Part shown: positions 11,017-60,474 of the stretch, in pieces | Layout: the number at the start of each line of letters is the position of its first letter | Position numbering within the stretch: position 1 is the first letter of the stretch | Assembly (NCBI GenBank): GCA_002269645.1 | Contig: NIVC01000894.1 | Coordinates: 186,001-250,000 of the forward strand | DNA length: 64,000 nt | Origin: Macrostomum lignano | Lineage: Eukaryota | Direction: 5' to 3' | Notes under the pieces: model-generated | What the model was told of the DNA's origin: nothing | What the model saw: the letters and a program-made list of their open reading frames with translations, nothing else | The model's database searches: none | Program-made: the position numbers and the translations under genes

Positions 11017-14000
11017 ATGGGCAGTGAAGCCTCTAAGGAACAGGATAAGGTACCTTATTAAATTACTGTTTAGTTTTGATTAAAGTATTATATTTGTTTC
11101 TGTGTGTTAAAGCAGTAAATTAAATAAAATATTTTTTCTTTGTACTTACTTCCTCGTGTGCAGCGCGTGTGCCTCAGTTGTAGTTGCAGCAACTCACTCA
11201 CATGTTCGAATCTCCAGACTCTCGACCAGCTTGTCAGCCGAGGTGACTTCGGCCAGGTGCGGCGGCTGGCAACGCGCCAGCTGGTCACCAGCGCTGATGA
11301 AGCTCGTCGGACCGTCCTCATGCTGGTGGCCGACGCTTCTGAAACTCCCATGCACACTGAAAAGTGCATCTTGTACTTATTTGAGCTGGGCGCGAACCCC
11401 AAGGCGACTGACGCGAACGGCGACACGGCTGCGCACCTGGCAGCCCGGCGGGACCACCTGCGGCTGCTGACGCTGCTTTCGTTCGATGCGAAGTGGCTGC
11501 GGAACGACAACGGCGCCACTCCGCTGATGGAGGCGGCGCAGACTGGAAGCTGGAAATGCGCCAAGCACCTGCTGCACCTGCTCAGGCAGAAAAGTTTCAT
11601 TAAGTGTCTGGAGCATGGAAACTCGAAGAGGCTGCTCGAACTGAAGAATTCCGAGGGTCGGACGGCGTCGGACCTGGCGAAGCTCAGCGGCCACTCAGAG
11701 CTGGCCAGCTACATCGAGCGGTGAGTGAGCAGTTCGCTTCTGTGTCCATGCCTCCCAGCTAATGGGGTGGCGGTTGATCTTAGTTGCTGTTGCGCAGAAG
11801 CTGTAGGGCCTCGTATTGCAGTGAGAGTGTGTGGGTTGAGCTGCAGATGGAGAACTGGGAGGCTGTGCGTGAGTGCTTTGTGAGACATTGTGAGATGGAA
11901 GGAAACTCATGCTGCAGAAATTGAAAATGAGCTGCGTGTGAGAAGTCGGATGCGCTCTCGCCAATGCTGATTGTTGCAGAGCTGCTGCAGTCCTCTTCGA
12001 AACTGTCTGTGGGCAGCTCAGATAATTAAGAATTCATATACTAAAAATGGTTTGTCGGTAGGTGGGTAGGCAGGTAGGCATCCATGTGATCGATAAGAGA
12101 AAAAATTTTGTCCTGCAACTTCTTAAACTTTATTTTAGCAATCGTAATTGTCGTGTTTGAGACAACTGCGACATCGCTGCTCATTGTTGCTGTTGCAGGG
12201 AGATGCGGCTGGTTGTGGATGCACACGGCTATATCTCCGGCCTGACAGCCCAGGTGAGCGGCATCTGCGGTGCCGATGCGGCTGCAGCTGAGCAGCTGTG
12301 CTCAAATTTCCCGCTCGCCTTTGCAGGAGGAGGCGGATCGACAGGAGCTGCAGCGGCTGGCCAAGGCGGGCGACTCGGCGGGGCTGCGGCGAGCGGCGAC
12401 CTGCGGCAGCTGCGACCTGCCTGACGATGAGGGTCGCACCGCGTTGATGTGGGCAGCTCAAAGCAGCTCGTGCGGTGATGAGGCTCTGTGGGAGCAGCTG
12501 GTGCAGCTGGGTGACCCCACCTGTGCGGATAAATGTGCTGACAGTTGCCTGCACCATGCAGCCTTGGCTGGCAATTCTTCCGCAGCCTCCGCTCTGCTGG
12601 CTGCCGGAGCCTCCACCAATGCCAGGGGTCACTGGAAATTCACGGCCCTCATGGGGGCGGCCTTTGCGCACCCCGCCACCGCCGCCGCAGTCGGTCAGGT
12701 TCTGCTGAACTCAGGGGCGGATTGGAGCCTGAAGGACAGAAACGGCAGGACTGCGCTGGATTTGGCCACACAAAAGGGAAGGAGCGAACTGGCTGAGCTG
12801 CTGCGTGGGTGAGTTTCCATGGCGACTGAGAATGTCACTCTCACTTTGATTTATCATTGATAAACAATATGCTGTAATTTATGATTGAATATTGAATGAG
12901 TTTTGTAGTTTAAATGGAGTTTGCAGTGCAGTTTGACTGCAGATTGCAAGTTAAATGTTAATGTTCAGCTGCCTGCGAGCTGTGAGACACCAGCAAGAAG
13001 CATTGTGGTGTGGCATTTGAGCTCAAAATTATTAGGAATAGTTATTTTAATAAAAAACAATAAAAACTATATAATGAAGCACAGAGCATGGATGGACTCC
13101 TATCTGAATTTCCTGACTTAAGACTTTGCACTGCCCATTTAGGTACGACGACAAGATCTACTTCGATGAGCCTATGGCACTGCCGTGAGTTCCTTCAGCA
13201 CACAGCTACAGCACACAGCTACAGCACACAGCTACAGGACACAGCTACAGCACACAGCTACAGCACACAGCTACAGCACACAAAGCTACATCACACACAG
13301 CTACAGCACACAGCTACAGCACACACAGCTACAGCACACACAGCTACAGCACACAGCTACAGGACACAGCTACAGCACACAGCTACAGCACACAGCTACA
13401 GCACACACAGCTACAGCACACAGCTACAGCACACAAAGCTACATCACACACAGCTACAGCACACAGCTACAGCACACACAGCTACATCACACACAGCTAC
13501 AGCACACAGCTACAGCACACACAGCTACATCACACACAGCTACAGCACACAGCTACAGTACACAGCTACAGCACACAGCTACAGCACACACAGCTACAAC
13601 ACACAGCTACAGCACATAGCTAAAGCACACACAGCTACAGCACACACAGCTACATCACACAGCTACAGCACACAGCTACAGCACACACAGCTACAGCACA
13701 CACAGCTACAACACACAGCTACAGCACACACAGCTACAACACACAGCTACAGCACACAGCTACAGCACACACAGCTACAGCATGCAAATTATCCCTCATT
13801 GCTTCACTTCGCATCCTCTCAGTCCCGAAGGCCCCCCGTTCCGGGAGCGCTGGGACGCCGTTCGCCTCATCGGTCGCGGTGGCTTCGGCGAAGTCCACGA
13901 AGTTCGAACTGACACGGGCGTCACGTGCGCTGCCAAGACTCTTAAACTTCCTGTGCAGCTTGTTGATGAGCTGCCCTCTGTGAGCACAGAGATCCACAGA

Positions 14001-16101
14001 GCTGTCGAGAGCGAGAGAAACCTGTGCCGACTGCGGCATCCCAACATCGTCAGGTTCTTGCACATCGCTCAGCCGGAGCCCGCCACAGTCGTTGTGTTCA
14101 TGGAGCTGCTGGACGGCCGAAGCTTGGAGAGGTTTATCGACAACAGGCCACTGTACGAGCTGACGATTCGAGACTTCAGCGAGCAGGTGAGCATTGTGCA
14201 TCCTTGATGCTCCTGTTCCATGTTCTCATAAATGATGACTGCTCACTGACCGACCGCTCGCAGATCTGCCGCGCGCTGATCTACCTGCACAGCCGGCAGC
14301 CGCCCGTGATCCACAGAGACATCAACTGCTCGAACATAATTGTTTGTGCCGACAACACGCGAATCAAGCTGATCGACTTCGGCCTGTCAGTCAAGCTGGA
14401 GCAGTCAGTCAGCCACATCTCAGCCTCCAAAGCCACCCCGAAGGCACTCTTAACTTCTTGGCTCCGGAGCTGCTGGCACCGGAAGAGTCGGACAGCCCGC
14501 GGTACAGCAGAGAGTCGGACATCTGGGCGTTCGGCTGCTCGGTCTTCCAGATGGCCTCGGGCAGGCGGCCCTTCGCTGAGCACAAAATGCCCCAGACGCT
14601 GCCCGAGAAGCTGAGAAGCGGCGGTGCCCCCGCCCTGCTGACGGGCTGCTCTGCGGAGCTGCAGGACTTCTACAGCCGCTGCACCGCCATGGACCGAAAA
14701 AGCAGAAAGTCCGCACTGGAGCTGATGGGGCACGAGTTCCTCATCGTCAGGTACAAATGTACAGTAATTCGGCTAGACTTAGATACCTGTGCGATATGAT
14801 GCTGATGCAGAGGTGAGACCAATGTTGCACTTTTCATCAGTAGTCAAGCGGCCTCACCATGTGCTCACGCTAAAGTTGCACCGCATACTTTGAGCACTGA
14901 TCATTGAGGCGCCAGCTTGAAGCTCGGAGAAATATTGTGCTCAATTCCCTTCGATGAAGCAGAAGCCCTGATCAGACTTAAAAACAGTGCGAGCAATTTG
15001 CCGTGAATCTGTGAGAGCTGAGTTTTACTGGAATGAAATCCAATCAATTCCTTCAACTGCTGTGACTCCGCGCATCTCCTCATTTTAGCCTGTCTGTCAG
15101 GCGATGCCAAAATTCTGATCAGCGGCTTAACGCATCCTGACTCGCTTTCCACTTTTCCTAACAGCCCCGTTTTCAGGGAGAGTTGGGACTCCACTCGGTT
15201 CGTTGCAAGAGGATTCTTTGGTGACATTCAGGAAGTTGTCACTGACAGAGACATCAGGTGCGCTGCCAAGACTCTCAGACTGCCTGTGCAGCTCGGTGAT
15301 GACCAAACCTCTGTGAGCACAGAGATCCACAGAGCTGTCGAGAGCGAGAGAAACCTGTGCCGACTGCGGCATCCCAACATCGTCAGGTTCTTGCACATCG
15401 CTCAGCCGGAGCCCGCCACAGTCGTTGTGTTCATGGAGCTGCTGGACGGCCGAAGCTTGGAGAGGTTTATCGACAACAGGCCACTGTACGAGCTGACGAT
15501 TCGAGACTTCAGCGAGCAGGTGAGCATTGTGCATCCTTGATGCTCCTGTTCCATGTTCCCATGAATGATGCTGCTCACTGACCGACCGCTCGCAGATCTG
15601 CCGCGCGCTGCTCTACCTGCACAGCCGCAGCCGCCCGTGATCCACAGAGACATCAACTGCTCCAACATAATTGTTTGTGCTGACAACACGCGAATCAAGC
15701 TGATCGACTTCGGCCTGTCAATCAAGCTGGAGCAGATAGTCCGTCGCCACTCATCATTCCCGGAGGCATTGAAAGGCACTCTGAACTTCATGGCGCCAGA
15801 GCTGCTCGGAATCGGCACCTCGGAATGCGAGCAGTGCAGCAGAGAGTCGGACATCTGGGCGTTCGGCTGCTCGGTCTTCCAGATGGCCTCCGGTAACAAA
15901 CCATTCACCAGAGTCAAAAGCTTCTGGGAAATGGCCCAGCATCTTGACAGGAAGGGCGCCCCCGCCCTGCCGGACGGCCGGTCTGCGGAACTGAGGGATT
16001 TCTACAGCCGCTGCACCGCCAAGGACCGCAGGAGAAGAAGATCCGCACAGGAGCTGCTGAAGCACGAGTTCCTGGTGAAAAAGTCTGACTCGCAGCGCTA
16101 A
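11017..16101 (+). CDS. Ankyrin-repeat tandem-kinase gene, copy 1 (ANK-ANK-K1-K2; about 960 aa if two 1-nt deletions are corrected)
   Basis: Exons 11017-11049, 11164-11720, 12199-12253, 12327-12808, 13143-13184, 13823-14186, 14264-14750, 15165-15519, 15596-16101. All introns are GT-AG with matching phases (0,2,0,2,2,0,2,0). 1-nt deletions at about 14437 and 15627. Confidence 0.75.
11164..11720 (+). CDS. Copy 1 exon 2: ankyrin block A (about 4 repeats)
   Basis: [48 protein letters not shown]. Ends at the GAGCG|gtgagt donor. Confidence 0.88.
12327..12808 (+). CDS. Copy 1 exon 4: ankyrin block B (about 4 repeats)
   Basis: DDEGRTALMWAA, CLHHAALAGN...LLAAGASTNA, FTALMGAA...LLNSGADWSLKDRNGRTALDLA. 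Confidence 0.9.
13197..13781. repeat. Intronic (CACAGCTACAGCA)-type microsatellite, copy 1
   Basis: Lies between exon 5 and the first kinase exon. Confidence 0.95.
13823..14750 (+). pseudogene. Copy 1 kinase K1 (MEKK/STE11-like Ser/Thr kinase), frameshifted in the activation segment
   Basis: [26 protein letters not shown] and DFG are in one frame. [25 protein letters not shown] and HEFL are in the -1 frame after ACCCCGAAGGC (about 14437). Confidence 0.8.
15165..16101 (+). pseudogene. Copy 1 kinase K2 with a 1-nt deletion (mutation or sequencing error)
   Basis: ARGFFGDI, AAK, HRD, DFG, APE. Reads AGCCGCAG instead of AGCCGGCAG at about 15627. Acceptor tttccacttttcctaacag|. Confidence 0.78.
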
Positions 16102-16599
16102 GCCGAGATACTTCTGAATATGTTTGTAAAGATTTTAGATATTTTATGCACGATGCACGTAAGTAAAGCACTATTTAAAGTTGTTTTGTGCTTTTTTTTC
16201 CATTTTCCTGAATTTTTTACATGACTTTTTGCAGTGCTAAAACTTGCATACTGCATCAATTCCCCTGTGACTGAGTTCCAGATGCACCAATTGACGTTTC
16301 TCATTTAAGCTCAACTTGTTTATCTGCACCGCAGGCGTTAACTGATCTCCTCTATCCTCAAGCAGTTTAACTGCTCAAATGCTTTGCTTCACTCAATTTC
16401 TTTGCTGTTAGCCATCAGCTGCTGTCGCTATTTTGTGAGCTTTGTGAGGAATTACTCAAATATACTCATTTGCGACTCTCTAGCATACCGGAACTGCCCG
16501 ACTCTCATCACTGAGTGGTTGCCGTGTTTGTTTAACTCAACTGCTGATAAAGTGTTAAATGAAATTGGGGCGGTGGAAGAGAGTGAGATGCTGAAACAG

Positions 16600-17200
16600 C
16601 AGCTGCAGAGAGAGTAGAGGCAGCTGCAGAGAGAGTAGAGGCGGCTGCAGAGAGAGTAGATGCAGCTGCAGAGAGAGTAGATGCAGCTGCAGAGAGAGTA
16701 GAGGCGGCTGCAGAGAGAGTAGAGGCGGCTGCAGAGAGAGTAGATGCAGCTGCAGAGAGAGTAGAGGCGGCTGCAGAGAGAGTAGATGCAGCTGCAGAGA
16801 GAGTAGATGCAGCTGCAGAGAGAGTAGAGGCGGCTGCAGAGAGAGTAGAGGCGGCTGCAGAGAGAGTAGAGGCGGCTGCAGAGAGAGTAGATGCAGCTGC
16901 AGAGAGAGTAGATGCAGCTGCAGAGAGAGTAGATGCAGCTGCAGAGAGAGTAGAGGCGGCTGCAGAGAGAGTAGAGGCGGCTGCAGAGAGAGTAGAGGCA
17001 GCTGCAGAGAGAGTAGATGCAGCTGCAGAGAGAGTAGAGGCGGCTGCAGAGAGAGTAGAGGCAGCTGCAGAGAGAGTAGATGCAGCTGCAGAGAGAGTAG
17101 AGGCGGCTGCAGAGAGAGTAGAGGCAGCTGCAGAGAGAGTAGAAGCAGCTGCAGAGAGAGTAGAGGCAGCTGCAGAGAGAGTAGAGGCAGCTGCAGAGAT
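16600..17200. repeat. 21-bp minisatellite (GCAGCTGCAGAGAGAGTAGAG)n
   Basis: Read directly from the sequence. Homologous arrays at 44727-44785 and 56530-56965. Confidence 0.95.
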
Positions 17201-23863: not shown

Positions 23864-23864
23864 C

Positions 23865-24738: not shown

Positions 24739-27700
24739 ATGGCAGAGCGAGGGCGACTACCACCACCACCACCAGCATCACCACCACCATCACCACCAAT
24801 AAGACGACGAAGTTCACTAGGAGAGCCACCAAAGCCACCAAAGCCACCAAAGCCACCAAAGCCACCAAAGCCACCAAAGCCACCAAAGCCACCAAAGCCA
24901 CCAAAGCCACCAAAGCCACCAAGGCCACTACTTGACGAAGAAGTAAGTGACGTTAAAGTGACCAAATTAAAACACATTAATACCTGAAGGAGGTTCCACT
25001 GCAGTTGCAAAGACTCACTCACCTGTTTGAATGAGCAGCTTGGGTGCCTCAATTGCAGTTGCAGGAGCTCACTCAGCCGGACCCCACCAACCGGGCAAGC
25101 GTCAGATCCTCACCAGCCGATCTCCAGACTCTCGCCCACGACGTCATCCGAGGTGACTTCGACCAGGTGCGGCGGCTGGCAACGCTCCAGCTGGTCACCA
25201 GCGCTGATGCAGCTCGTCGGACCGTCCTCATGCTGGTGGCCGACGCTCCTGAGACTCCCGTGCACACTGAAAAGTGCATCTTGTACTTATTTGAGCTGGG
25301 CGCGAAACCCAAGGCGGCTGACGCGAACGGCGACACGGCTGCGCACCTGGCAGCCCGTCGGGACCACCTGCGGCTGCTGACGCTGCTGTCGTTCGATGCG
25401 AAGTGGCTGCGGAACGACGACGGCGCCACTCCGCTGATGGAGGCGGCGCGGACTGGAAGCTGGAAATGCGCCAAGCACCTGCTGCATCTGCTCAGGCAGA
25501 TAAGATTCAATGAGTTTTTTCAGCACGGAAACTCAAAGAGGTCGCTGCTGCTCGGACTGCAGGATCGCGAGGGTCGGACGGCGTCGGACCTGGCGAGTCG
25601 CAGTGGTCACTCAGAGCTGGCCAGCTACATCGAGCGGTGAGTGAGCAGTTCGCTGCTGTGTCCATCAAGTTTTGCAGCATTCGGCTGGGGTGGCCAGACC
25701 TGCAGTCTCAGGTCAGCCAATCAGAGCCAGTCAGCTGAGCTTGTCTCTGTCTGACTGCTTGATGGGCGACAGCTGTGATTGGCTGGCTGCCTCACAGCCA
25801 ATGGGGTGCCGGCTGATCTCAGTCGAGAGTGGAAACTGTAGGGACTGTGCGTACGTGCTTTTTTGGAGACATTGTGAGATGGAAGGAAACTCATGCTGCA
25901 GAAATGGAAAATGAGCTGCGTATGAGAAGTCGGATGCGCTCTCAATGCTGATTGTCGCAGAGCTGCTGCAGTTCTCTTGGAAACTCCATCTGCGAGCAGC
26001 TCAGATAGTTAGGAATTTATTCTGCTTACTAAATTTATCATAAATATTTATTTTGGCGATCGTAGTTGTCGGATTTGAGAAAATTGGAAATTCGCTGCTC
26101 ATTTTTGCTGTTGCAGGGAGATGTGGCTGCTTGTGGATGCATCTGGCAGGATCTCCGGTCTGACAGACCAGGTGAGCGGCATCTGCGGTGCCGATGCGGC
26201 TGCAGCTGAGCAGCTGTGCTCAAATTTCCCGCTCGCTTTTGCAGGAGGAGGCAGATCGACAGGAACTGCGGCGGCTGGCCAAGGCGGGCGACTCGGCGGG
26301 GCTGCGGCGAGCGGTGACCCGCGGCAGCTGCGACCTGCCTGACCATGAGGGTCGCACTGCGTTGACGTGGGCTGCTGAGAACAGCTCGTGCGGTGATGAG
26401 GCTCTGTGGGAGCAGCTGGTGCTGCTGGGTGACCCCACCTGTGCGACCATATGGGCTACAAGTTGCCTGCACTGGGCAGCCGAGGCTGGCAATTCTGCCG
26501 CATCCTCCGCTCTGCTGGCTTCCGGAGCCTCCGCCAATGCCAGGGGTCGGGCTGAATTCACGCCCCTCATGCTGGCAGCCATCATTGCGCCCCCCGACAC
26601 CGCCGCCGCAGTGGGTCGGGTTCTGCTGGACTCAGGGGCGGATTGGAACCTGAAGACCAGAGACGGCAGGACTGCGCTGTATTTGGCCACACAGAAGGGA
26701 AATATCGAACTGGCTGAGCTGCTGCGTGGGTGAGTTTCCATGGCGACTGAGAATGTCTCTCTGACTTTGATTTATCATTGATAAAATCATGCTGTACTTT
26801 ATGATTGAATATTGAGCAGCTGACTGCAGTTGCTCTGAGTGGGCATTTTAACATTTTTGTAGTTTAAATGGGCAGCAGACACTGACTGAGCTGCATTGAG
26901 GGAGTTTGCAGTGCAGTTTGACTGCAGATTGCCAGTTGAATATTAATGTTCAGCTGCCTGCGAGCTGTGAGACACCAGCAAACATTTTGCTGTGACAGTT
27001 GAGTTTAATTTCAACATCTGAAATTTTTTGTGCTTTTCTGCTAATATCATTTTTTACAATAAAACAAAAGTATTAATGAAATCTGTTTCATAGTTAATTA
27101 AAACAAAATGAAGAAATGAAGCACAGAGCATGGGCTCTCAACTGAATTCCCTCTTGACTTCAGACTCCGCACTGCCTATTTAGGTACGACGGCAAGATTT
27201 ACTTCGAGGAGTCTCTGGCACCGCCGTGAGTTCCTTCAGCACACACAGCTACAGCACACACAGCTACAGCACACAGCTACAGCACACACAGCTACAGCAC
27301 ACAGCTACAGCACACAGCTACAGCACACAGCTACAGCACACACAGCTACAGCACACACAGCTACAACACACAGCTACAGCACACAGCAACAGCACACAGC
27401 TACAGCACAGACAGCTACAGCATGCAAATTATCCCTCATTGCTTCAATTCGCATTCCCTCAGACCCGAAGGTCCTCCGTTCCTGAAGCGCTGGGACGCCG
27501 TTCGCCTCATCGGCCGAGGAGGCTTCGGCGAAGTCCAGGAAGTTCGAACTGACACGGGCGTCACGTGCGCTGCCAAGACTCTCAGACTGCCTGTGCAGCT
27601 CGGTGATGACCAAACCTCTGTGAGCACAGAGATCCACAGAGCTGTCGAGAGCGAGAGAAACCTGTGCCGACTGCAGCATCCCAACATCGTCAGATTCTTG

Positions 27701-33790: not shown

Positions 33791-35191
33791 CTACTCTCAA
33801 GTATACCAGTATTTTCACATCAAATCACTCTCCACCTCTCTCATCTCTGCATTTTTTCACTGCCCACTCGACTCTGCAAGTCTGCACTCAAACCTCTACT
33901 GCCATAAGTAGTATGCGTTCCGTATAAAGGAGAGTCCGAGACCGAGGCACCGGGCTCGCATTCAGCCAATCAGGTGCAGGCAGTGCATCTCTCAGACACT
34001 GTCTTCTCATACGATAATCGCGGTATCTTTAGGACTGTGTGCCAGCCTGTGTGGAACTTCTGACTTTTTTAGTTCTTCAAGCAATGCACATTTACAAAAA
34101 ACTTCATTTTTCAAATATTTCATAGCTTGCGCTGTCCATTAACTTATTATTTCCTAATCTGCGCTGGCACCCGCTTTAGTATATCAGTAGCAGCATGAGC
34201 CTCAGTAGTAGCAGTGGCACAGGGACTACTAAATACTCTAAGTATTGCTCTGCTCTAAGTATTTAGTAGTCCCTGTAGCTGCACCAGCGTCTTCAATCTA
34301 TCACTTTACAAATTTATTACTTTATTACAGAATACTGATTGCATATAAAAATTATACTATTACATAATGCTTAATTCAAAGCGGATACATTAAAACAACT
34401 AAAATCTGTTTCAGTGGAAATCAGGCTACGATACGCTGATGACTTACCATGTTGATGCAGCCTGTTCTGCAGCTTCTTTTCATGCTTATCATTAATGGCG
34501 AGATTACTGATCTCAGAGTTTAGCTGCCCCATCTCATTCTATTGAAGTTCATTGTCTTAAAATTGATGCTGCATAAAAGCGCGAAGCCTGATCCAAATTT
34601 AGTCTGTAAAAGTTTTATAGCGAGGATTTTGCTAGCCGAACATGCTGCATACCTTGCACTTTGCTCGCTTTTCTATGCGATCTCATTGCTATTCGATAGT
34701 GCAGTAAAAGTGACTCCCTGCTTAGACAAATCATACTGTCCGCCACAGACATTTTGGTTCTGCCGCACCTCACCACGCACTCTTCAGGCAAATGTTCCTG
34801 TATTAATGGTGAAGATCTTTACATTTGTTGCTCATTATGGGCTGTTCTGTCTGCGCTTTGTCATGAAACCACCAGCGCTAAATACACACATTATCAAACG
34901 TACTCGTATTCATAGAATGCTTTAACAAAGGCGGCTTCGAAAACTCTCACATCCCAAAGCAAGAAGACGTTTTCAGTAACAAAGTTTGGAGTCTGAGTGG
35001 GTGTGAAGAAAATGAGAAAGGTACAATGAGTGAGGTGTGTAATAAAAACACATTATATCGCGAGATGAAAAATACACTTGAATGTCGATCTTCTGCTGGA
35101 TTGGAATCTTACAGCTTCAGTGTGTTTGGATTAGAGATGTTTCCAGACTCCTCCATAAGCAGCGCCAGCAGCAGCACCTGCACATGGCTTT

Positions 35192-37869: not shown

Positions 37870-40170
37870 AAAGGATAGAAGGATGGGAGGAGAGGGGAGA
37901 TAGGGAAGGGAGGAGAAGGGAGATAGGGAAGGGAGGAGAGGGGAGATGGGGAAGGGAGGAGAGGGGAGATGGGGAAGGGAGGAGAGTGCAGATGGGGAAG
38001 GGAGGAGAAAGAAGATAGGGAAGGGAGGAGAGGGAAGATAGGGAAGGGAGGAGAGGGAAGATAGGGAAGGGAGGAGAGGGAAGATAGGGAAGGGAGGAGA
38101 GGGAAGATAGGGAAGGGAGGAGAGGGAAGATAGGGAAGGGAGGAGAGGGAAGATAGGGAAGGGAGGAGAGGGAAGATAGGGTAGGGAGGAGAGGGGAGAT
38201 GGGGAAGGGAGGAGAGGGGAGATGGGGAAGGGAGGAGAGTGGAGATGGGGAAGGGAGGAGAGGGAAGATAGGGAAGGGAGGAGAGGGGAGATGGGGAAGG
38301 GAGGAGAGGGAAGATAGGGAAGGGAGGAGAGGGGAGATGGGGAAGGGAGGAGAGGGAAGATAGGGAAGGGAGGAGAGGGGAGATAGGGAAGGGAGGAGAG
38401 GGGAGATAGGGAAGGGAGGAGAGGGGAGATAGGGAAGGGAGGAGAGGGAAGATAGGGTAGGGAGGAGAGGGGAGATGGGGAAGGGAGGAGAGGGAAGATA
38501 GGGAAGGGAGGAGAGGGAAGATAGGGAAGGGAGGAGAGGGAAGATAGGGAAGGGAGGAGAGGGAAGATAGGGAAGGGAGGAGAGGGGAGATAGGGAAGGG
38601 AGGAGAGGGAAGATAGGGTAGGGAGGAGAGGGGAGATGGGGAAGGGAGGAGAGGGAAGATAGGGAAGGGAGGAGAGGGAAGATAGGGTAGGGAGGAGAGG
38701 GGAGATGGGGAAGGGAGGAGAGGGGAGATGGGGAAGGGAGGAGAGTGGAGATGGGGAAGGGAGGAGAGGGGAGATGGGGAAGGGAGGAGAGGGGAGATAG
38801 GGAAGGGAGGAGAGTGGAGATGGGGAAGGGAGGAGAGGGAAGATAGGGAAGGGAGGAGAGGGAAGATAGGGAAGGGAGGAGAGGGAAGATAGGGTAGGGA
38901 GGAGAGGGGAGATAGGGAAGGGAGGAGAGGGAAGATAGGGTGGGGAGGAGAGGGGAGATGGGGAAGGGAGGAGAGGGGAGATGGGGAAGGGAGGAGAGTG
39001 GAGATGGGGAAGGGAGGAGAGGGGAGATGGGGAAGGGAGGAGAGGGGAGATAGGGAAGGGAGGAGAGTGGAGATGGGGAAGGGAGGAGAGGGAAGATAGG
39101 GAAGGGAGGAGAGGGAAGATAGGGAAGGGAGGAGAGGGGAGATAGGGAAGGGAGGAGAGGGGAGATAGGGAAGGGAGGAGAGGGAAGATAGGGAAGGGAG
39201 GAGAGGGAAGATAGGGTAGGGAGGAGAGGGGAGATGGGGAAGGGAGGAGAGGGGAGATGGGGAAGGGAGGAGAGTGGAGATGGGGAAGGGAGGAGAGGGG
39301 AGATGGGGAAGGGAGGAGAGGGGAGATAGGGAAGGGAGGAGAGGGGAGATAGGGAAGGGAGGAGAGGGAAGATAGAGAAGGGAGGAGAGGGGAGATAGGG
39401 AAGGGAGGAGAGGGAAGATAGGGAAGGGAGGAGAAGGGAGATAGGGAAGGGAGGAGAGGGGAGATGGGGAAGGGAGGAGAGGGGAGATGGGGAAGGGAGG
39501 AGAGTGGAGATGGGGAAGGGAGGAGAGGGAAGATAGAGAAGGGAGGAGAGGGGAGATAGGGAAGGGAGGAGAGGGAAGATAGGGAAGGGAGGAGAAGGGA
39601 GATAGGGAAGGGAGGAGAGGGGAGATGGGGAAGGGAGGAGAGGGGAGATGGGGAAGGGAGGAGAGTGGAGATGGGGAAGGGAGGAGAGGGAAGATAGGGA
39701 AGGGAGGAGAGGGAAGATAGGGAAGGGAGGAGAGGGGAGATAGGGAAGGGAGGAGAGGGGAGATAGGGAAGGGAGGAGAGGGAAGATAGGGAAGGGAGGA
39801 GAGGGATGATAGGGTAGGGAGGAGAGGGGAGATGGGGAAGGGAGGAGAGGGGAGATGGGGAAGGGAGGAGAGTGGAGATGGGGAAGGGAGGAGAGGGGAG
39901 ATAGGGAAGGGAGGAGAGGGGAGATGGGGAAGGGAGGAGAGTGGAGATAGGGAAAGAGGAGAGGGGAGATAGGGATGGGAGGAGAGGGGAGATGGGGAAG
40001 GGAGGAGAGGGGAGATGGGGAAGGGAGGAGAGTGGAGATGGGGAAGGGAGGAGAGGGAAGATAGGGAAGGGAGGAGAGGGGAGATGGGGAAGGGAGGAGA
40101 GGGAAGATAGGGAAGGGAGGAGAGGGAAGATAGGGAAGGGAGGAGAGTGGAGATGGGGAAGGGAGGAGGG
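37870..40170. repeat. 2.3-kb polypurine minisatellite, about 23-bp unit (TAGGGAAGGGAGGAGAGGGGAGA)
   Basis: Read directly. The 804-aa minus-strand ORF is an artefact. Confidence 0.97.
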
Positions 40171-41014: not shown

Positions 41015-43853
41015 ATGGCAGAGCGAGGGCCAAAAGCCTTGCTTAATAAGTTAATAAGAAGAAAAAAGAAACCATTTCTCTTTTCTGATGAAAAAGTAAG
41101 TAAAAATGCCTTAAATAAATATGCCTTGGGCTTGATTGCATTTTGCAGGAACTCACTCACATGTTTGAATGTGCAGCTTGGGTGCCTCAATTGCAGTTGC
41201 AGGAACTCACTCAGCCGGACCCCTGCAACCAAGCAGGCGTCGGAGGCTCACCAGCCGATCTCCAGACTCTCGCTCATGACGTCATCCAAGGTGACTTCGG
41301 CCAGGTGCGGCGGCTGGCAACGCGCCAGCTGGTCACCAGCGCTGATGCAGCTCGTGGGACCGTCCTCATGCTGGTGGCCGACGCTCCTGAAACTCCCGTG
41401 CACACTGAAAAGTGCATCTTGTACTTATTTGAGCTAGGCGCGAACCCCAAGGCGGCTGACGCGAACGGCGACACGGCTGCGCACCTGGCAGCCCGGCGGG
41501 ACCACTTGCGGCTGCTGACGCTGCTGTCGTTCGATGCGAAGTGGCTGCGGAACGACAACGGCGCCACTCCGCTGATGGAGGCGGCGCGGACTGGAAGCTG
41601 GAAATGCGCCAAGCACCTGCTGCACCTGCTCAGACAATGGAGGTTCAATGAGTGCTTTGAGCACGGAAACTCGAAGAGGACTCGGCTGCTCGGACTGAAG
41701 GATCGCAAGGGTCGGACGGCGTCGGACCTGGCGATGCGCAGTGGTCACTCAGAGCTGGCCAGCTACATCGAGCGGTGAGTGAGCAGTCAGCTGAGCTTGT
41801 CTCTGTCTCTGACTGCTTATAGACGAGAGCTGTGATTGGCTGGCTGCCTCCCAGCCAATGGGGTGCCGGTTAATCTCAGTCGAAAATGGAAGCTGTAGGG
41901 CCTCGGTGTGCAGTGGGAGTGTGTGGGTTGAGCTGCAGATGGAGAACTGGGAGGCTGCAGTGCGTGAGTGCTTTCTGTGCCATTGTGAAATGGAAAGAAA
42001 CTCATGCGGAAGAAATGAAAAATGAGCTGCGTGTGAGAAGTCGGATGCGCTCTCGCCAATGCTGATTGTTGCAGAGCAGCTGCAGTCCTCTTGGAAACTC
42101 CATCTGCGAGCAGCTCAGATAACTAGGAATTTCTGTCTACTGAATTTAGTACGAAAATTGAAGCAGATCAAAGAGATTTAATCGTACAAGATAATTTTAT
42201 TTTGGCCATGGTAATTGTCTGATTTGAGAAAACTGCAAATTGGCTGCTCATTTTTGCTGTTGCAGGGAGATGCGGCTGGTCGTAGATGCACTCGGCGAGA
42301 TTTCCGGCCTGACAGCCCAGGTGAGCGGCATCTGAGGTGCCGATGCGGCTGCAGCTGAGCAGCTGTGCTCAAATTTCCCGCTCGCCTTTGCAGGATCAGG
42401 CGGATCGACAGGAACTGCAGCGGCTGGCCAAAGCGGGCGACTCGGCGGGGCTGCGGCGAGCGGCGACCCGCGGCAGCTGCGACCTGCCTGATCATGAGGG
42501 TCAAACCGCGTTGATGTGGGCAGCTCAGAACAGCTCGTGCGGTGATGAGGCTTTGTGGGAGCAGCTGGTGCAGCTGGGTGACCCCACATGTGCGACTATA
42601 TTAGCTGAAAGTTGCCTGCACCGTGCAGCCAAGGCAGGCAATTCTGCCTCAGCCTCCGCTCTGCTGGCTGCCAGAGCCTCCGCCAATGCCAGGGAAGATT
42701 GGAGTGAATCCACGCCCCTCATGCTGGCAGCCATCAATGCGCCCCTCGCCAGCGCCGCCGCAGTCGGTCAGGTTCTGCTGGACTCAGGGGCGGATTGGAG
42801 CCTGAAGGACATGCGGGGCAGGACTGCGCTGGATTTGGCCACACAGCACGGAAAGAGCGAACTGGCTGAGCTGCTGCGTGGGTGAGTTTCCATGGCGACT
42901 GAGAATGTCTCTCCGACTTTGATTTATCATTGATAAACATTATGCTGTAATTTATGATTGAATATTGAGCAGCTGACTGCAGTTGCTCTGAGTGGGCATT
43001 TTTACATTTTTGTAGTTTAAATGGGCAGCAGGGACTGACTGAGCTGCATTGAGGGAGTTTGCAGTGCAGTTTGACTGCAGATTGCCAGTTGAATGTTAAT
43101 GTTCAGCTGCCTGCGAGCTGTGAGACACCAGCAAGCATTTTGCTGAGTCAGAAATCAGAAAAAAAGTAAGAGCTTAGAAAGAATGATGTTGGCAAGAAAT
43201 TTTGCAAAAATTATAGTAATTCTTTGAATGCTAGCTAGATGTATAGAACATATACGGTCAACTTTCTTTCAGATTTGAAGGAGTGATCTACTTCGATGAG
43301 TCCCTGTGAGTTTGCTACAGCACACACAGCTACAGCACACACAGCTACAGCACACACATCTACAGCACACACAGCTACAGCACACACACCTACAGCACAC
43401 AGCTACAGCACACAGCTACAGCACACAGCTACAGCACACAGCTACAGCACACAGCTACAGCACACATAGCTACAGCACACAGCTACAGCACACAGCTACA
43501 GCACACACAGCTACAGCACACACAGCTACACCACACACAGCTACAGCACACACAGCTACAGCACACACAGCTACAGCACACACAGCTACAGCACACAGCT
43601 ACAGCACACACAGCTACACCACACACAGCTACACCACACACAGCTACAGCACACACAGCTACAGCACACACAGCTACACCACACACAGCTACACCACACA
43701 CAGCTACAGCACACAGCTACAGCACACAGCTACAACACACACAGCTACAGCACACAGCTACAGCACACAGCTACAGCACTCAGCTACAGCACACAGCTAC
43801 AGCACTCAGCTACAGCACACAGCACGGAGCACGAGTTCCTGACGCGCGGGTAG
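41015..43853 (+). CDS. Ankyrin-only paralogue, copy 3 (kinase deleted; about 420-437 aa)
   Basis: Exons 41015-41095, 41149(or 41203)-41774, 42266-42320, 42394-42881, 43273-43305 and a speculative 43823-43853. The microsatellite abuts GAGCACGAGTTCCTGACG, the last codons of the kinase. Confidence 0.72.
41149..41774 (+). CDS. Copy 3 exon 2: ankyrin block A
   Basis: Ankyrin motifs as in the other copies; open frame. Confidence 0.88.
42394..42881 (+). CDS. Copy 3 exon 4: ankyrin block B
   Basis: GQTALMWAA, CLHRAAKAGN, STPLMLAA, KDMRGRTALDLA. Confidence 0.9.
43315..43822. repeat. CACAGCTACAG-type microsatellite, copy 3 (at the kinase deletion breakpoint)
   Basis: Read directly from the sequence. 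Confidence 0.94.
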
Positions 43854-48129: not shown

Positions 48130-49719
48130 CCGTAAGATGACCCACTTACTAATTACTACATATGAGGCGAAACAGCGCGATTAGGCTTCCTGCCCCTATT
48201 GCAATCCAATGCTAAAAACAGAAAGGCGTTAGTCTTGAGGCTGCGCCCATCTTTCGCCAGCGGTAGAAAAGCTCGCGAGAGAGGCAACCGCGATCTTCAT
48301 CCGGCCGGTGTCCCGGACGAATGCGCGTTAGTCACGGATCCGGTCCGGGGTGGTCAGCTCGTCCAACCTTAGCAGCAGGTAGCTGAGCTGGTGTCTCCGC
48401 GCTACGTTGAAGTGCAGGCAGGAGGCGTCGCGTGATGCGCCACAGTTTCCTACTCCAAGTCACAAAAGGCGAATGGGGGAGCAGCTAATTTGCATTCAAA
48501 AATGTCTTTGGAAGAAGCCATGGCCAGTAATGACAATGCACATCTCACTGAGGTCAGTTTTACTCAAGGAGATTAGGCATTCAGATACTTTCCAGTTAAT
48601 TGGAGGCATCGCATCGCACGTTTGTTGATATTCGGAGCAGCCTCTCCAGTGCAGCGGGTGTTGGTGGCTGCTGAAGCATTTGCGAATGGCGCGGTTGACG
48701 GATGACTTCGGGGTAGACAGCTCGACCGAGTGCTGCGCTCCACCCAGGGTGCTGTCTCGCTTGGCGAGTGGATCCACCATCTCGTTGCCAAGGATATCGC
48801 TGTGGCCTGGTGTCCAGATCACGTTGATTCTATTGAGAATCGCTGCAAGCTTTTGCAAGCTTTTGAAACAAGGCGAAACTGACTTGGCTGATAGCTTGAT
48901 GGAAGACAAGGACTTTATAGCGGCCTGGTAGTCAGAGTAGAAACTGTGTCAAAGTTTGTGCAGCTGCTTAGTACATTGGTTGACGGTTGATGGATTGAAA
49001 ATCGATATATATATACATTAATTTATAAAGGCTCTCTTGCAGGATCGCCTCACCGGTGTGGAAAACGGATGTGCCGGCTCCAGCCAGGCCATCGCACAGG
49101 GATCCGTCAGTGAAGCAGTGGATGCCCTGACTCCATCGGTTGACGCCCGCGTCTAGTGGTAGCGATCTCGCGGCTGAATGGTTCACTTGAATTCCTTCCT
49201 GATGAGTTAAGGAATGGCACCTCGACAAGGTTGAGGTGGATGTGTTGTAGACTGCGACGTATATACGCGCTATTCCTTGTGCGGAATGAGCGTCCTCTCA
49301 GGCGTGAAGCCCGAGGGGAATTTAATAATAAATCTATCCCAGATTAAACGCGTGGCAGCTTGAATCGTCTCAGTTTCGATAGCCAGGTGCAGCGGAGGCA
49401 TGTTGAGGATGCTTTTGAAGAGAGAGAGAGAGAGAGAGAGAAAGCCCCTCTTAGAGGTTAGAGGGGTACCCTGCAGCTGGTACAGCCGTTTTAATCTCTA
49501 GCGCACTGGACCAAATCAAACACGTGTAGGTGATGCTGGTTCAGATGATTCCCGTGTAGATCCACCGGATGTCTTGGGAGAGAGCCCTCAGGTATGGCTC
49601 TTTTTACTTGTGCGAAACATTTTTTAGCGTGCACGATGACGCTGTCAACATTTTTGCTTCGAAGCATATACCATACGTGAGCGTTGCACCTTTTGTTACC
49701 TTGACTATGGGGTTGCCTT
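48130..49719 (-). mobile_element. Degenerate RNase H-containing non-LTR retrotransposon (I/LOA/R1-group-like): RT C-terminus, RNase H, Cys-His tail
   Basis: CFTDGS (48968-49228 ORF); [24 protein letters not shown]...[13 protein letters not shown] (48496-48909); GLSPK..RWIYTGII fragments near 49560-49600. Many stops and frameshifts. Confidence 0.85.
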
Positions 49720-51058: not shown

Positions 51059-51063
51059 GTATA

Positions 51064-51725: not shown

Positions 51726-52842
51726 ATTAGTTTTTTTTCAGATTACCTACGAGTAGGAGACTGTAAAAAAGGTTCAATAAATAGCGCAGTAAAATTTAAC
51801 TTCATAAAAATGTAGAGACGCCATATATTAATTACCCGGATTTTTCAACTTTCTGTTAAACGGAAACACCGGCCTAAGCCTGAAGGGGCCAACAACAGCC
51901 TTTCCCATATTTTCTAGCTTCACGGGGTCCCTGGCTGTGCAAAGGTCTCAAGTTTTGTTTATGCGGTCTGAAGTTTCCCTTAAATAGCGTGATTTTTCTG
52001 ACACTGCTCGCAAGCACTGCTCCCAGCAGATTACCACTACCAGGTCAGGTTGATGTACTGTATGCTACAAGTGTATGATTTTTTAAATATTAATAAGCGT
52101 TTGTCTATCACCTTTGTCCTTCGAGTTGTCTGCGGCTTTAAACGTTTCTGCTTTGGATTTGTTATTGCAGAGGCAACAAAGGAGGCCTGGAAAGCCGCAG
52201 ACCACTAATGCTGGCCTGTCAGCTGGCCAGCGGTTTAATAAGTGAATTTCTGAATTTCTCATTTCCAACTCGCCTCCTGGTTTCTGGCACTGCCAACTTT
52301 CCAAATATTCACGACCATATGCTACAGTGGTCTCATCAAAGTTCCAGCCAGTGCAGTTGCAAATCCAGCACTTTTTGTCAGTCTGAAGTTTTGAGCTGAA
52401 GTAACACTTATTTACTACTGTTCAGTAGCAGTCCGTGTCTTGCAGTTGAGTCTGAGCAGAACACTGATCTGGCTTCACCGCAAAAAAAGTATATTCCAGC
52501 TCGAAATTCACGATCGATAAATGAAGTTCGTCTGCAAAAAAATTATTTTTCCTAGTTGGAATTTTATTTGAACAAAAAATCCGCAGTCGCACACCGACTG
52601 CTTTAAGTAGGCACGAACTGACATTGCAGCAGTTCTGCTGTTCCCTCAGAGCCAACGGAAGAGGCAGAAAGCTGGGCAGAGGCGGCCGCACAAGCCAGCA
52701 AAAGCAGCCGCAATCTGAGCAGGCAGGGTGAGAAGGAATTCGCTGCAGCTGCTCCAGTGCCAATAAAATCTGCTGCAGAGGCGGCCGCTGCCCTGCCGGA
52801 CTCTCGGGCTGAGCTGAGACACCTGCGACTGAGCTTTCTGCC

Positions 52843-55800
52843 ATGGCAGAGCAAGTGCCAACATCATTTCCTGGTGAAAAAGTAAGTAAAGTTAAAGTGA
52901 GACATTTAACAATCTGTAGGCTCGATTGCAGTTGCACGAACTCGAACTCACAATTTCATTCGTATGTTTGAATACGAGTATGCAGCTTGGGTGCCTCAAT
53001 TGCAGTTGCAGGAACTCACTCAGCCGGACCCCAGAGACCGGGCAAGCGTCGGATCCTCACCAGCCGATCTCCAGACTCTCGCCCACGACGTCATCCGAGG
53101 TGACTTCGGCCAGGTGCGGCGGCTGGCAACGCGCCAGCTGGTCACCAGCGCTGATGCAGCTCGTCGGACCGTCCTCATGCTGGTGGCCGACGCTCCTGAG
53201 ACTACCGTGCAGACTGAAAAGTGCATCTTGTACTTATTTGAGCTGGGCGCGAACCCCAAGGCGGCTGACGCGAACGGCGACACGGCTGCGCACCTGGCAG
53301 CCCGGCGGGACCACCTGCGGCTGCTGACGCTGCTGTCGTTCGATGCGAAGTGGCTGCGGAACGACAACGGCGCCACTCCGCTGATGGAGGCGGCGCGGAC
53401 TGGAAGCTGGAAATGCACCAAGCACCTGCTGCACCTGCTCAGGCAGAAAAAGTTCAATGAGTACAACAAGCACGGAAACTTGAAGAGGTCGCGGCTGCTC
53501 GGACTGGAGGATCGCGAGGGTCGGACGGCGTCGGACCTGGCGAGGCTCAGCGGCCACTCAGAGCTGGCCAGCTACATCGAGCGGTGAGTGAGCAGTTCGC
53601 TGCAGTGTCTGTCTGATCGTATTTGTCCGTTTTGAGAAAATTGCAAAATCGCTGCTCATTTTTGCTGTTGCAGGGAGATGCGGCTGGTTGTTGTTGGTAA
53701 ATATGGCACAATCTCCGGCCTGACAGCCCAGGTGAGCGGCATCTGCGGTGCCGATGCGGCTACAGCTGAGCAGCTGTGCTCAAATTTCCCGCTCGCCTTT
53801 GCAGGAGGAGGCGGATCGACAGGAGCTGCAGCGGCTGGCCGAGGTGGGCAACTCAGCGGGGCTGCGGCGAACGGCGACCCGCGGCAGCTGCGACCTGCCT
53901 GACGAATGGGGTCGCACCGCGTTGATGTGGGCAGCTCGGAACAGCTCGTGCAGTGATGAGGCTCTGTGGGAGCAGCTGGTACAGCTGGGTGACCCCACCT
54001 GTGCGACTATATCCGCTGCCGAATATATGACTACCAGTTGCCTGCACCATGCATCCGATGCTGGCAATTCTGCCGCAGCCTCCGCTCTGCTGGCTGCCGG
54101 AGCCTCCGCCAATTCCAGGAATTGCTGGGAGTTCACGCCCATCATGGAGACAGCCGATGCGCCCCCCACCTCCGCCGCCGCAGTCGGTCGGGTTCTGCTG
54201 GACTCAGGGGCGGATTGGAGCCTGAAGGACTGTCAGGGCAGAACTGCGCTGGATTTAGCCACGGACAATGGAAGCGGCGAACTGGCTGAGCTGCTGCGTG
54301 GGTGAGTTTCCTGAGAACGTCTCTTTGATTTAGATTTATCATTTATGAACGTTATGCTATAATTTATGATTGAATATTGAGCAGCGGACTGTAGTTTCTC
54401 TGAGTGGGCATTTTTACATTTTGTAGTTTAAATGGGCAGCAGGGACTGACTGAGCTGCATTGAGGGAATGCCGTGCTGTTTGACTGCAGATTTCTAGTAG
54501 AATATTAATTTTCAGCTGCCTGCGAGCTGAGAGACACCTGTTTGAACAATATAGCAAATAATATTAAGGAGCTCAGAGCATAGGCTCTCCCATCAGAATT
54601 CCCTTAACTTCAGACTTTGCATTGCATATTTAGGTACGACGGCAAGATTTACTTCGACGAGCCTCTGGCACTGTCGTGAGTTCCTTCAGCACACACAGCT
54701 ACAGCCTACAGCCACAGCACACACAGCTACGGCACACACAGCTACAGCACACACAGCTACAGCACACAGCTACAGCACACACAGCTACAGCACACAGCTA
54801 CAGCACACACAGCTACAGCACACAGCTACAGCACACACAGCTACAGCACACACAGCTACAGCATACAGCTACAGCACACAGCTACAGCGCACACAGCTAC
54901 AGCACACACAGCTACAGCACACAGCTACAGCACACACAGCTACAGCACACACAACTACAGCACACTTAGCTGCAGCACACAGCTACAGCACACAGCTACA
55001 ACTCACAGCTACAGTATGCAAATTATCCCTCATTGCCTCAATTCGCGTTTCCTCAGACCCAAAGGCCCCCCGTTCCGGGAGCGCTGGGACGCCGTTCGCC
55101 TCATCGGCCGCGGAGGCTTCGGCGAAGTCCACGAAGTTCGAACTGACACGGGCGTCACGTGCGCTGCCAATACTCTCAGACTGCCTGTGCAGCTCGGTGA
55201 TGAGTTACCCTCTGTAAGCACAGAGATCCACAGAGCTGTCGAGAGCGAGAGAAACCTGTGCCGACTGCGGCATCCCAACATCGTCAGGTTCTTGCACATC
55301 GCTCAGCCGGAGCCCGCCACAGTCGTTGTGTTCATGGAGCTGCTGGACGGCCGAAGCTTGGAGAGGTTTATCGACAACAAGCCGCTGGACGAGCCAAAGA
55401 TTCGAGACTTCAACAAGCAGGTGAGCATTGTGCATCCTTGATGCTCCTGTTCCATGTTCTCATGAATGATGACTGCTCACTGACCGACCGCTCGCAGATC
55501 TGCCGCGCGCTGCTCTACCTGCACAGCCGGCAGCCGCCCGTGATCTACAGAGACATCAACTGCTCGAACATAATTGTTTGTGCCGACAACACGCGAATCA
55601 AGCTGATCGACTTCGGTCTGTCAATCAAGCTGTCAGTCAGCCACTTCTCAGCCTCCACTCAGTCACCCAAAGGCACTCTGAACTTCATGGCGCCAGAGCT
55701 GCTCGGAGCGGGAGAGTCGGACAGCGTGCAGTACAGCAGAGAGTCGGACATCTGGGCGTTCGGCTGCTCGGTCTTCCAGATGGCGTCCGGCTCGAGGCCG

Positions 55801-60458: not shown

Positions 60459-60474
60459 CAAAGAGGGCACAGAC

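Follow-up and report, generated by a model that had tools for sequence, protein, structure and literature searches.

Position-Specific Hypervariability on a Ligand-Binding-Type Ankyrin Surface in a Tandem Gene Family of the Flatworm Macrostomum lignano

Introduction

A 64-kb stretch of Macrostomum lignano DNA (assembly GCA_002269645.1), referred to here as the window, carries four tandem units on the + strand (c1 to c4), recognised by comparison of the window with itself, in which the order of elements is exon 1, ankyrin (ANK) domain A, hairpin exon 3, ANK domain B (exon 4), and none to two STE/MAP3K-like kinase domains. Between 12327 and 54301, that is from the first base of c1 exon 4 to the last base of c4 exon 4, the domain B copies of these units differ from one another in short, structurally spaced patches that are close to randomised, in genes whose introns are nearly identical. 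We assign a probability of roughly 0.55 to the explanation that diversifying selection acts on a ligand-binding-type surface in a family that is otherwise homogenised by recent duplication and gene conversion.

The four units are best explained as members of a Macrostomum-specific multigene family of cytoplasmic proteins. In a homology search, considered for the best 120 of 153 matches, about 55 M. lignano relatives (P0001-P0055) were followed by distant generic ankyrin proteins, mostly unnamed and of metagenome or bacterial origin, with E values of 5e-15 or weaker among the matches listed, and no Schistosoma protein occurred among these best 120 of 153. One database protein, P0001, is the exact product of c3 exons 2, 3, and 4. 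Splice phases also agree across the copies, exon 2 ending in phase 2, exon 3 adding one base, and exon 4 starting in phase 0.

The Ankyrin Fold and Its Register

Domain B matches the Pfam families Ank_2 (64.3 bits, cut-off 27.3) and Ank (56.7 bits, cut-off 21.1), and domain A matches Ank_2 with 56.4 bits. An AlphaFold model of P0001, for which the input was a 24-sequence family alignment with identity down to 45%, reached a pLDDT of 92.1 and a pTM of 0.89 and shows a two-domain ANK protein with paired helices in every repeat, the strands of exon 3 falling at model residues 204-212. The best Foldseek matches of the model (E=3e-16) were rigid fusions of two designed ankyrin repeat proteins (DARPins), tankyrase ARC modules, and also ankyrin-B. 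The ankyrin and kinase domain identities are secure.

In designed ankyrin binders, six positions per repeat are randomised, which lie on the concave face contacting the target (PMC3602593). These DARPin positions (2, 3, 5, 13, 14, and 33) were taken as the face class in a 33-residue register (D1 x2 x3 G4 x5 T6 ... A11 A12 x13 x14 G15), which was anchored on the model helices before counting, and the classes were fixed in advance as a safeguard against circularity. On the basis of this register and the predicted secondary structure, the variable residues described below would lie on the concave face.

Hypervariable Positions in ANK Domain B

Domain B is encoded by exon 4, which in every window copy is bounded by a TTTGCAG acceptor and a GTGAGT donor and has an open frame:

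12327-12808, + strand: c1 exon 4, ANK domain B (N-cap repeat and four repeats), from splice motifs, open frame, and Pfam
26245-26729, + strand: c2 exon 4, ANK domain B, from splice motifs and open frame
42394-42881, + strand: c3 exon 4, ANK domain B, encoding part of P0001 exactly
53805-54301, + strand: c4 exon 4, ANK domain B, with a 15-nt in-frame insertion (AEYMT) in the turn of repeat 2

Seven further distinct paralogues were obtained from six loci (L001-L006) of the same assembly, making 12 exon-4 copies of which two are identical, and thus 11 distinct sequences. All 12 retain open frames, in-frame indels only, intact AG/GT sites, and the same four repeats.

A reading made from the sequence alone had proposed that hypervariability is restricted to the ligand-binding face of domain B, set on a nearly constant scaffold in the manner of a natural DARPin. 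The protein strings it quoted are all present in the translations of c1/c2/c3/c4: the turns are DDE/DHE/DHE/DEW, DKCAD/TIWAT/TILAE/TISAAEYMTT, GHWK/GRAE/EDWSE/NCWE, and DRN/TRD/DMR/DCQ, and the other variable strings, including those of the inner helix, are HHAAL/HWAAE/HRAAK/HHASD, MGAAFA/MLAAII/MLAAIN/METADA, and TQK/TQK/TQH/TDN. When the exon 4 DNA of the copies is aligned, the flanking introns are almost identical and the differences within the exon fall into short clusters, the flanking introns and framework differing by 2-10%. In c1 the codon table of variable columns places these clusters as follows:

12423-12437, + strand: repeat 1 patch, turn
12459-12464, + strand: repeat 1 patch, positions 13-14
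12528-12542, + strand: repeat 2 patch, turn
12555-12566, + strand: repeat 2 patch, positions 10-13
12627-12641, + strand: repeat 3 patch, turn
12654-12665, + strand: repeat 3 patch, positions 10-14
12735-12743, + strand: repeat 4 patch, turn
12771-12785, + strand: repeat 4 patch, positions 13-17

Among the four window copies, 17 of the 23 face columns are variable against 39 of 137 elsewhere (Fisher p=4.7e-5). With all 11 paralogues, mean entropy is highest at register position 2 (2.65 bits), followed by positions 3 (2.17), 13 (1.96), 5 (1.93), 14 (1.47), 10 (1.36), and 1 (1.19), and at the remaining positions it is 0.65 bits or less, being 0 at T6, 0.11 at L8, and 0.22 at A11 and A12. This profile recurs in all four repeats of domain B. 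By structural element, entropy falls from 1.20 bits in the turn to 0.75 in the inner helix and 0.38 in the outer helix; the variable residues thus form the beta-turn tips and an i, i+3, i+4 stripe along the inner helix, with conservation in the outer helix and at buried positions. The entropy peaks of the 24-protein family alignment (identity as low as 45%) coincide with those of the 11 paralogues. Aromatic residues make up 11.2% of the face versus 1.9% of the framework, and charged residues 38.8% versus 20.2%, a paratope-like usage.

The parallel with DARPins is partial. The five positions that vary most here all belong to the six of the library, and T6, L8, A11, and A12 are constant in both. 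Position 33, however, is not variable in the flatworm proteins (0.49 bits), positions 1 and 10 vary in addition, and loop length changes too, as in the five-residue insertion of c4. Moreover, the flatworm repeats are non-consensus, with inserts of up to five residues, and belong to an evolved family rather than a synthetic library. The nearly constant scaffold of the sequence-only reading is likewise borne out at the four signature positions, with scattered framework sites varying around them and a framework dN/dS (omega) of about 0.8-0.9.

Variation in Domain A and the Hairpin Linker

Domain A and the hairpin are encoded by exons 2 and 3, of which exon 2 was located by alignment and has its acceptor 6 nt upstream, as deduced from protein P0003. 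The tail of exon 2, comprising an insert loop and the last repeat, is a second variable region:

11190-11720, + strand: c1 exon 2, ANK domain A (tail 11593-11720)
12199-12253, + strand: c1 exon 3, beta-hairpin linker between the ANK domains, 55 nt
25059-25636, + strand: c2 exon 2, ANK domain A (tail 25503-25636)
26117-26171, + strand: c2 exon 3, beta-hairpin linker, 55 nt
41197-41774, + strand: c3 exon 2, ANK domain A (tail 41641-41774)
42266-42320, + strand: c3 exon 3, beta-hairpin linker, 55 nt
53006-53583, + strand: c4 exon 2, ANK domain A (tail 53450-53583)
53674-53731, + strand: c4 exon 3, beta-hairpin linker, 58 nt

The core of domain A is almost invariant, as the sequence-only reading had stated: the proportion of synonymous differences (pS) is 0.059 and that of nonsynonymous differences (pN) 0.046, and the face register positions of repeats 2-3, which serve as an internal control, show entropies of 0-0.72 bits. 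The claim that variation is restricted to domain B proved too narrow. In the domain A tail pS is 0.118 and pN 0.149, with variable sites in the insert loop (W154, C159, F160, E161), in the turn of the last repeat, and at its positions 13-14; the tip of the exon 3 hairpin differs in every copy (DAHGY/DASGR/DALGE/VGKYGT), and many scattered framework sites vary too.

The location of these additional stretches has a bearing on what the variable face might contact. These stretches (insert loop and last repeat in domain A, and the tip of the hairpin) are the parts nearest to domain B in the chain, and the pTM of 0.89 would imply a fixed arrangement of both domains. Both points would suit a face that works as an interface within the molecule or the family, co-evolving with the domain A tail and hairpin, or with a partner paralogue, kinase, or caspase, in autoinhibition or pairing. 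Members of the family that have no effector domain keep the same pattern, which argues against this view, and we regard it as very unlikely.

Substitution Rates at the Variable Face

Intron 3, of 73 nt and near-identical among the copies, served as a neutral yardstick:

12254-12326, + strand: c1 intron 3
26172-26244, + strand: c2 intron 3
42321-42393, + strand: c3 intron 3
53732-53804, + strand: c4 intron 3

Pairwise, it differs by 2.1% when the four window copies are compared and by 4.7% across the 11 paralogues; synonymous sites differ by 9.9% in the framework (pS 0.099) and by 5-12% in exon 2. At face positions, nonsynonymous sites differ by 27-42% among the window copies and reach a pN of 0.414 among the 11 paralogues. 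This face pN of 0.414 can be set beside a pN of 0.046 in the exon 2 core and a difference of 0.047 in intron 3, and because face divergence stands at 4-9 times the neutral level, relaxed constraint alone is not its cause.

Counting methods are unreliable at the face, where the sequence is nearly random: variability is the same at all three codon positions, and the ratio of transitions to transversions (Ts/Tv) is 0.55 versus 1.24 in the framework. The Nei-Gojobori pS there is 0.35-0.38 and its ratio to pN is near 1, but this pairwise dN/dS of about 1 was dropped as a verdict, the codons being half-saturated and path averaging miscounting multiple hits. We therefore used an MG94 grid likelihood with fixed partitions (F3x4, fitted kappa 2.86) on the 11 paralogues, in which synonymous (alpha) and nonsynonymous (beta) rates are compared by likelihood ratio tests (LRT) with approximate p-values:

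Face: alpha 4, beta 8; beta versus alpha, LRT 4.86, p=0.028; alpha versus 1, LRT 18.3, p=1.9e-5
Extra positions 1, 4, 10, and 16 (chosen post hoc): alpha 2, beta 3; beta versus alpha, p=0.18; alpha versus 1, LRT 4.16, p=0.041
Framework (reference class): alpha 1, beta 0.88 (continuous fit)

The face nonsynonymous rate is thus 8 times the background synonymous rate, for which relaxed constraint alone is again insufficient, and dN/dS at the variable sites exceeds 1 with either denominator. In tests of single sites, whose power is low with 11 sequences, eight sites have beta above alpha at p<0.1, and six of the eight are turn or inner-helix residues (251, 286, 289, 318, 328, and 332 in P0001 numbering). 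The proposal of diversifying selection is partly supported by these values, the local synonymous rate being itself raised about fourfold and the local omega being about 2.

Parsimony reconstruction on a neighbour-joining (NJ) tree gave 2.69 nonsynonymous and 2.06 synonymous changes per site at the face, and 0.43 and 0.55 in the framework. Simulations with an omega of 8-12 on the background rate matched the nonsynonymous count and produced an apparent synonymous count of only 0.8-0.95 per site; over the wider range of omega 3-20 the latter was 0.7-1.4 per site, and the observed 2.06 was attained in 0 of 60 runs at omega 3-12 and in 2 of 60 at omega 20. Neutral simulations at a raised rate gave a nonsynonymous to synonymous ratio (N/S) of about 0.9, and the observed 1.31 was met in 0-6% of runs under three codon-frequency settings. 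The combinations compatible with the data have a local rate or age raised 3-5-fold together with an omega of 1.5-3.

These results bear on the simplest account, in which positive selection acted on point mutations arising at an ordinary rate in recent duplicates, with neither conversion nor older patches. The tandem arrangement with near-identical introns and the eightfold nonsynonymous rate are what it would lead one to expect. Its simulated synonymous counts, however, fall short of the 2.06 observed, an alpha of 1 at the face is rejected (p=1.9e-5), and a synonymous gradient extends into neighbouring codons; such an account appears highly improbable.

Raised Synonymous Rate and Gene Conversion

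The least expected result of the analysis is this synonymous gradient. At the face, the synonymous rate is about four times the background (p=1.9e-5), and in framework codons alpha declines with distance from variable codons, from 2.0 within two codons to 0.75 at 3-4 codons and 0.5 at five codons or more (LRT for heterogeneity 13.97, p=1.9e-4). Since simulations with selection on background-rate point mutations fall short of the synonymous excess, the patches are either older than the framework or locally more mutable, with selection acting on top. We favour the first possibility, that they are old patches amid homogenising conversion, in which case conversion would explain the gradient, over a local mutational process, although clustered multi-nucleotide mutations or templated micro-conversion from diverged paralogues fit the data.

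Exchange between copies is plain in the kinase domains that follow exon 4 in c1, c2, and c4:

13839-14742, + strand: c1 kinase domain K1, with a frame change (tblastn)
15172-16077, + strand: c1 kinase domain K2 (tblastn)
27488-28380, + strand: c2 kinase domain K1, with a frame change (tblastn)
28825-29731, + strand: c2 kinase domain K2 (tblastn)
55073-55971, + strand: c4 kinase domain in two exons, 55073-55423 and 55495-55971 (tblastn, Pfam Pkinase)

When the regions holding K1 and K2 (13780-16095 in c1 and 27420-29750 in c2) were compared, the two kinase copies were 48-66% identical at both ends and 96-100% identical over the central 320 nt or so, including the intron, which is a clear gene-conversion tract. 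Within exon 4, patches are shared reticulately among paralogues, with identical nucleotides: c1 equals the paralogue L5a in the repeat 1 turn (GAC GAT GAG GGT CGY) but clusters with L3 and L4 in repeat 2; similarly, L2 clusters with L3 in repeat 1 and with L1a in repeat 2.

The alternative that dispenses with most or all of the selection holds that mutation or micro-conversion is locally raised, that the surface codons are unconstrained and lie in mutational hot spots, and that purifying selection on the framework produces the 33-residue periodicity. A synonymous rate raised fourfold at the face and twofold within two codons, falling to 0.5-fold at five or more, is consistent with it, as are codon positions that vary equally with a Ts/Tv of 0.55, as in randomised sequence, an alpha above beta in repeat 4, and the many multi-nucleotide changes on branches (36-39 in 24 codons). 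Against it, beta exceeds alpha overall (p=0.028), the observed N/S is met in only 0-6% of neutral simulations, there is no base-specific bias and residue usage is paratope-like, and no mechanism is known to target sites spaced by a protein register. Adjacent framework codons, which share the raised synonymous rate, also keep a beta of 0.75, indicating that the region is under selection. We consider this alternative unlikely, and selection rather than mutation would account for most of the excess.

Adenine-directed mutagenesis of the kind performed by diversity-generating retroelements was examined as a candidate and rejected, since the variable face sites show no base bias (majority base A at 15, C at 14, G at 21, and T at 13). 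The only nearby sequences related to reverse transcriptase or RNase H were retrotransposon remnants at 48496-48909 and 63496-63988, and a template copy was not exhaustively searched for.

Kinase and Caspase Effectors

Intron 4, between ANK domain B and the kinase, is long and carries an array of (CAGCACACAGCTA)n, and the kinase follows it as two exons. The minisatellite, variable in length, is present in intron 4 of every copy:

13196-13782: (CAGCACACAGCTA)n minisatellite, c1 intron 4
about 27226-27552: the same, c2 intron 4
43314-43821: the same, c3 intron 4
54687-55014: the same, c4 intron 4

The motifs GxGxxG, AAK, HRD, DFG, and APE are present in the kinases, c4 having YRD instead of HRD, and kinase dN/dS is about 0.5. 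The closest solved kinase structures are those of MAP3K2 (6e-27), MAP3K5/ASK1, TNIK, WNK, and PAK, and these nearest relatives together with the motifs suggest that the domains are STE/MAP3K-like. A tblastn search of the window with P0004 (ANK and kinase) found a kinase or nothing immediately downstream of exon 4 in each copy, c3 being the copy without a kinase domain; a caspase query was run on the fetched loci only.

Other members of the family end differently. In P0010, P0030, P0043, and P0054, and at the loci L006 (5302-9608, the caspase at 8518-9608) and L001 (105-1366), domains A and B are followed by a caspase p20 domain, and other relatives have the same module of domains A and B with no effector. 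P0010 and P0030 start with MGSxxS, which we take to be a possible N-myristoylation signal.

First Exons and Damaged Copies

First exons vary greatly in length and sequence among the copies. That of c3 was placed by a splice join that fits the ..DEK|LQELTQ junction of P0003:

41015-41095, + strand: c3 exon 1 (MAERGPKALLNKLIRRKKKPFLFSDEK, GTAAGT donor)

The first exons of c2 and c4, like that of c3, are of an MAE type and differ in length, c2 exon 1 (about 24740-24990) containing an in-frame (PPK)n coding microsatellite. In c1, no MAE-type first exon was found within 420 nt upstream of exon 2, and exon 2 has a 35-nt 5′ deletion (around 11040-11230) which breaks the frame relative to the conserved acceptor. 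It is possible that c1 is decaying, or that its 5′ end is built differently. The kinase frame changes occur at a similar place in the second kinase exon (residues ~48-64) at 14261-14742 in c1, 27902-28380 in c2, and 12233-12738 in L005; candidate causes are a frameshift common to all three, a further short intron, and indel errors of long-read sequencing.

These defects raise the question of whether the whole pattern is the neutral drift of pseudogenes among redundant copies. The exon 2 deletion and missing first exon of c1, the two kinase frame changes, the loss of the c3 kinase, and a framework omega of about 0.8-0.9 would be in keeping with decay. Yet none of the 12 exon-4 copies has a broken frame, a frame-shifting indel, or a lost splice site, the variation is strictly periodic with the structure, kinase omega is about 0.5, and the frame changes could be errors of long-read assembly. 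Face divergence, at 4-9 times that of introns and synonymous sites, is beyond what drift would produce. For exon 4 the intact frames and a face divergence above neutral largely rule out pseudogene drift, and as an account of the family, decay is hardly credible.

Weighing the Evidence for Diversifying Selection

Diversifying selection on the domain B surface has to be judged against several points that count against it. With the local synonymous rate as denominator, omega comes to only about 2 (p=0.028), and the excess is uneven among the repeats, with beta/alpha of 2.5, 5, and 2 in repeats 1-3 and 0.4 in repeat 4, where alpha is 13, beta is 5, and a nonsynonymous excess is lacking. A raw binomial comparison of nonsynonymous with synonymous changes is not significant (p=0.094), and a constrained protein would be expected to have a framework omega below the 0.8-0.9 seen here. 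The tests themselves draw on 11 sequences and a coarse rate grid, and the NJ tree was fixed and takes no account of recombination. Conversion inside exon 4 is deduced from the kinase region and from the mosaicism of the patches, and the pairwise homoplasy index (PHI) test on exon 4 gave no distance-dependent recombination signal (p=0.21), a result that says little either way, incompatibility being high whatever the distance. Finally, some copies look damaged (the exon 2 deletion of c1, the frame changes in K1 of c1 and of c2, and c3 with no kinase), which could be birth-and-death decay or indel errors of long-read assembly.

Comparison with Known Systems

The closest natural parallel is found in the ANK repeats of fungal NLR proteins, although the M. 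lignano family is not an NLR family. In fungi, these repeats show positive selection on the concave surface combined with concerted evolution (Dyrka et al., 2014, PMC4986451), and conservation of the framework was credited by the authors to the latter (PMC4986451). Kinase and protease effectors occur in the same families, and roles in non-self recognition and regulated cell death have been proposed (PMC4986451). As in Podospora anserina Pa_3_8560 (and in the TPR and WD40 counterparts), the inner helix and beta-hairpin are variable on a conserved framework, and nonsynonymous change is in excess at concave positions (here beta 8, alpha 4, p=0.028). The differences are equally clear. No NACHT or NB-ARC Pfam domain is listed for the M. 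lignano relatives P0001-P0055, the window models consisting of ANK-A, hairpin, ANK-B, and kinase; the organism is an animal, and the effector follows the repeats on their C-terminal side. Fungal NLR repeats are over 85% identical to one another and polymorphic in number, whereas the four repeats here differ in length and sequence and their number is fixed. Flatworm diversity accordingly lies between paralogous genes, in contrast to the near-identical repeats that are shuffled within a fungal gene.

Among animals, ANK-caspases have been described as unique to parasitic flatworms (Schistosoma and others), with a single annelid ANK-caspase as the exception; M. lignano figures there only with a caspase that has a kinase-like pro-domain, and no hypervariability is described (PMC11463336). 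The relatives of the window genes resemble these proteins in having an ankyrin pro-domain N-terminal to a caspase, whereas the window copies themselves carry kinases or nothing. Judged from their predicted domains, bona fide ANK-caspase paralogues do exist in the free-living M. lignano, contrary to the current description.

Plant NLRs, and above all the highly variable NLRs of Arabidopsis (PMC8226289), are similar in forming tandem families with a variable exposed solenoid face, and in their birth-and-death evolution with damaged copies and intergenic exchange (PMC8226289). The flatworm genes differ from these leucine-rich repeat (LRR) NLRs in their repeat fold, in lacking a nucleotide-binding switch domain, and in the direct fusion to a kinase or caspase. 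In the literature searched, no account of hypervariability in the M. lignano ANK family was found, and a preprint on flatworm duplications names ankyrin and kinase superfamilies generically. An almost constant framework with near-random residues at the binding surface is what one would look for in a diversified receptor family, and this one would be a solenoid-repeat receptor family of an animal that uses ANK repeats with no NOD domain and is fused to kinases or caspases.

Other Features of the Window

Minisatellites are abundant in this eukaryotic window, and two uninterrupted open reading frames (ORFs) and two retrotransposon fragments accompany the array:

23-472, - strand: NUDIX hydrolase ORF, 149 amino acids, uninterrupted, upstream of the array
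2113-2571, - strand: prefoldin subunit ORF, 152 amino acids, uninterrupted, upstream of the array
48496-48909, - strand: RNase H-like retrotransposon ORF fragment, between c3 and c4
63496-63988, - strand: RNase H-like retrotransposon ORF fragment, near the window end
37881-40168: array of a 23-nt unit between c2 and c3 (GGAAGGGAGGAGAGGGGAGATAG, about 100 copies, 2.3 kb), with G and no C on the + strand (GC skew 1.0)
16599-17199: large array
32208-33791: large array
56529-56964: large array
60013-61049: large array

The two retrotransposon fragments are related to each other, and their Pfam RNase_H match is weak, at 20 bits and under the cut-off. The arrays at 16599-17199 and 56529-56964 have a common unit, and each lies downstream of a kinase.

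A Plausible Scenario and Its Meaning

Under diversifying selection, domain B would most likely be the specificity-determining, ligand-binding module of the protein. Its turn tips (positions 1-5) and inner-helix stripe (positions 10, 13, and 14), near-random between paralogues in all four repeats and enriched in Trp, Tyr, Phe, and charge, would present variable side chains held by the shared framework. Selection for distinct binding specificities may keep the paralogues apart at this surface, and tandem duplication together with gene conversion within and between arrays may keep framework, introns, and domain A alike, conversions that erase a distinct binding surface being selected against. The patches would in effect be older than their surroundings and would drag linked synonymous sites with them, as at loci under long-term diversifying selection. 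The constant domain A could serve docking, regulation, or oligomerisation, and the fused kinase or caspase would presumably turn ligand binding into an output. A protein built as sensor and effector in this way would suit immunity, cell death, or some other conflict.

A bolder version can be put forward, which we hold to be distinctly improbable. It treats the family as an NLR-independent germline receptor repertoire, a natural "DARPin library" coupled directly to MAP3K-like kinases and caspases, in which face codons are diversified also by a local process, either micro-conversion among the approximately 55 paralogues or targeted mutagenesis. Such a process would explain the fourfold synonymous excess that decays within a few codons.

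A methodological consequence follows from the raised local rate: a dN/dS test with a single synonymous rate would put selection here about fourfold too high. How flatworms recognise pathogens, parasites, and non-self is poorly understood. Much of the canonical extrinsic-apoptosis machinery has been lost in flatworms (PMC11463336). In a flatworm that is a tractable model, the tandem ANK-kinase/caspase family is a concrete sensor-effector candidate, and diversifying selection on its domain B surface, if true, would make it an animal counterpart of the ANK-NLR diversification of fungi, reached without a NOD domain.

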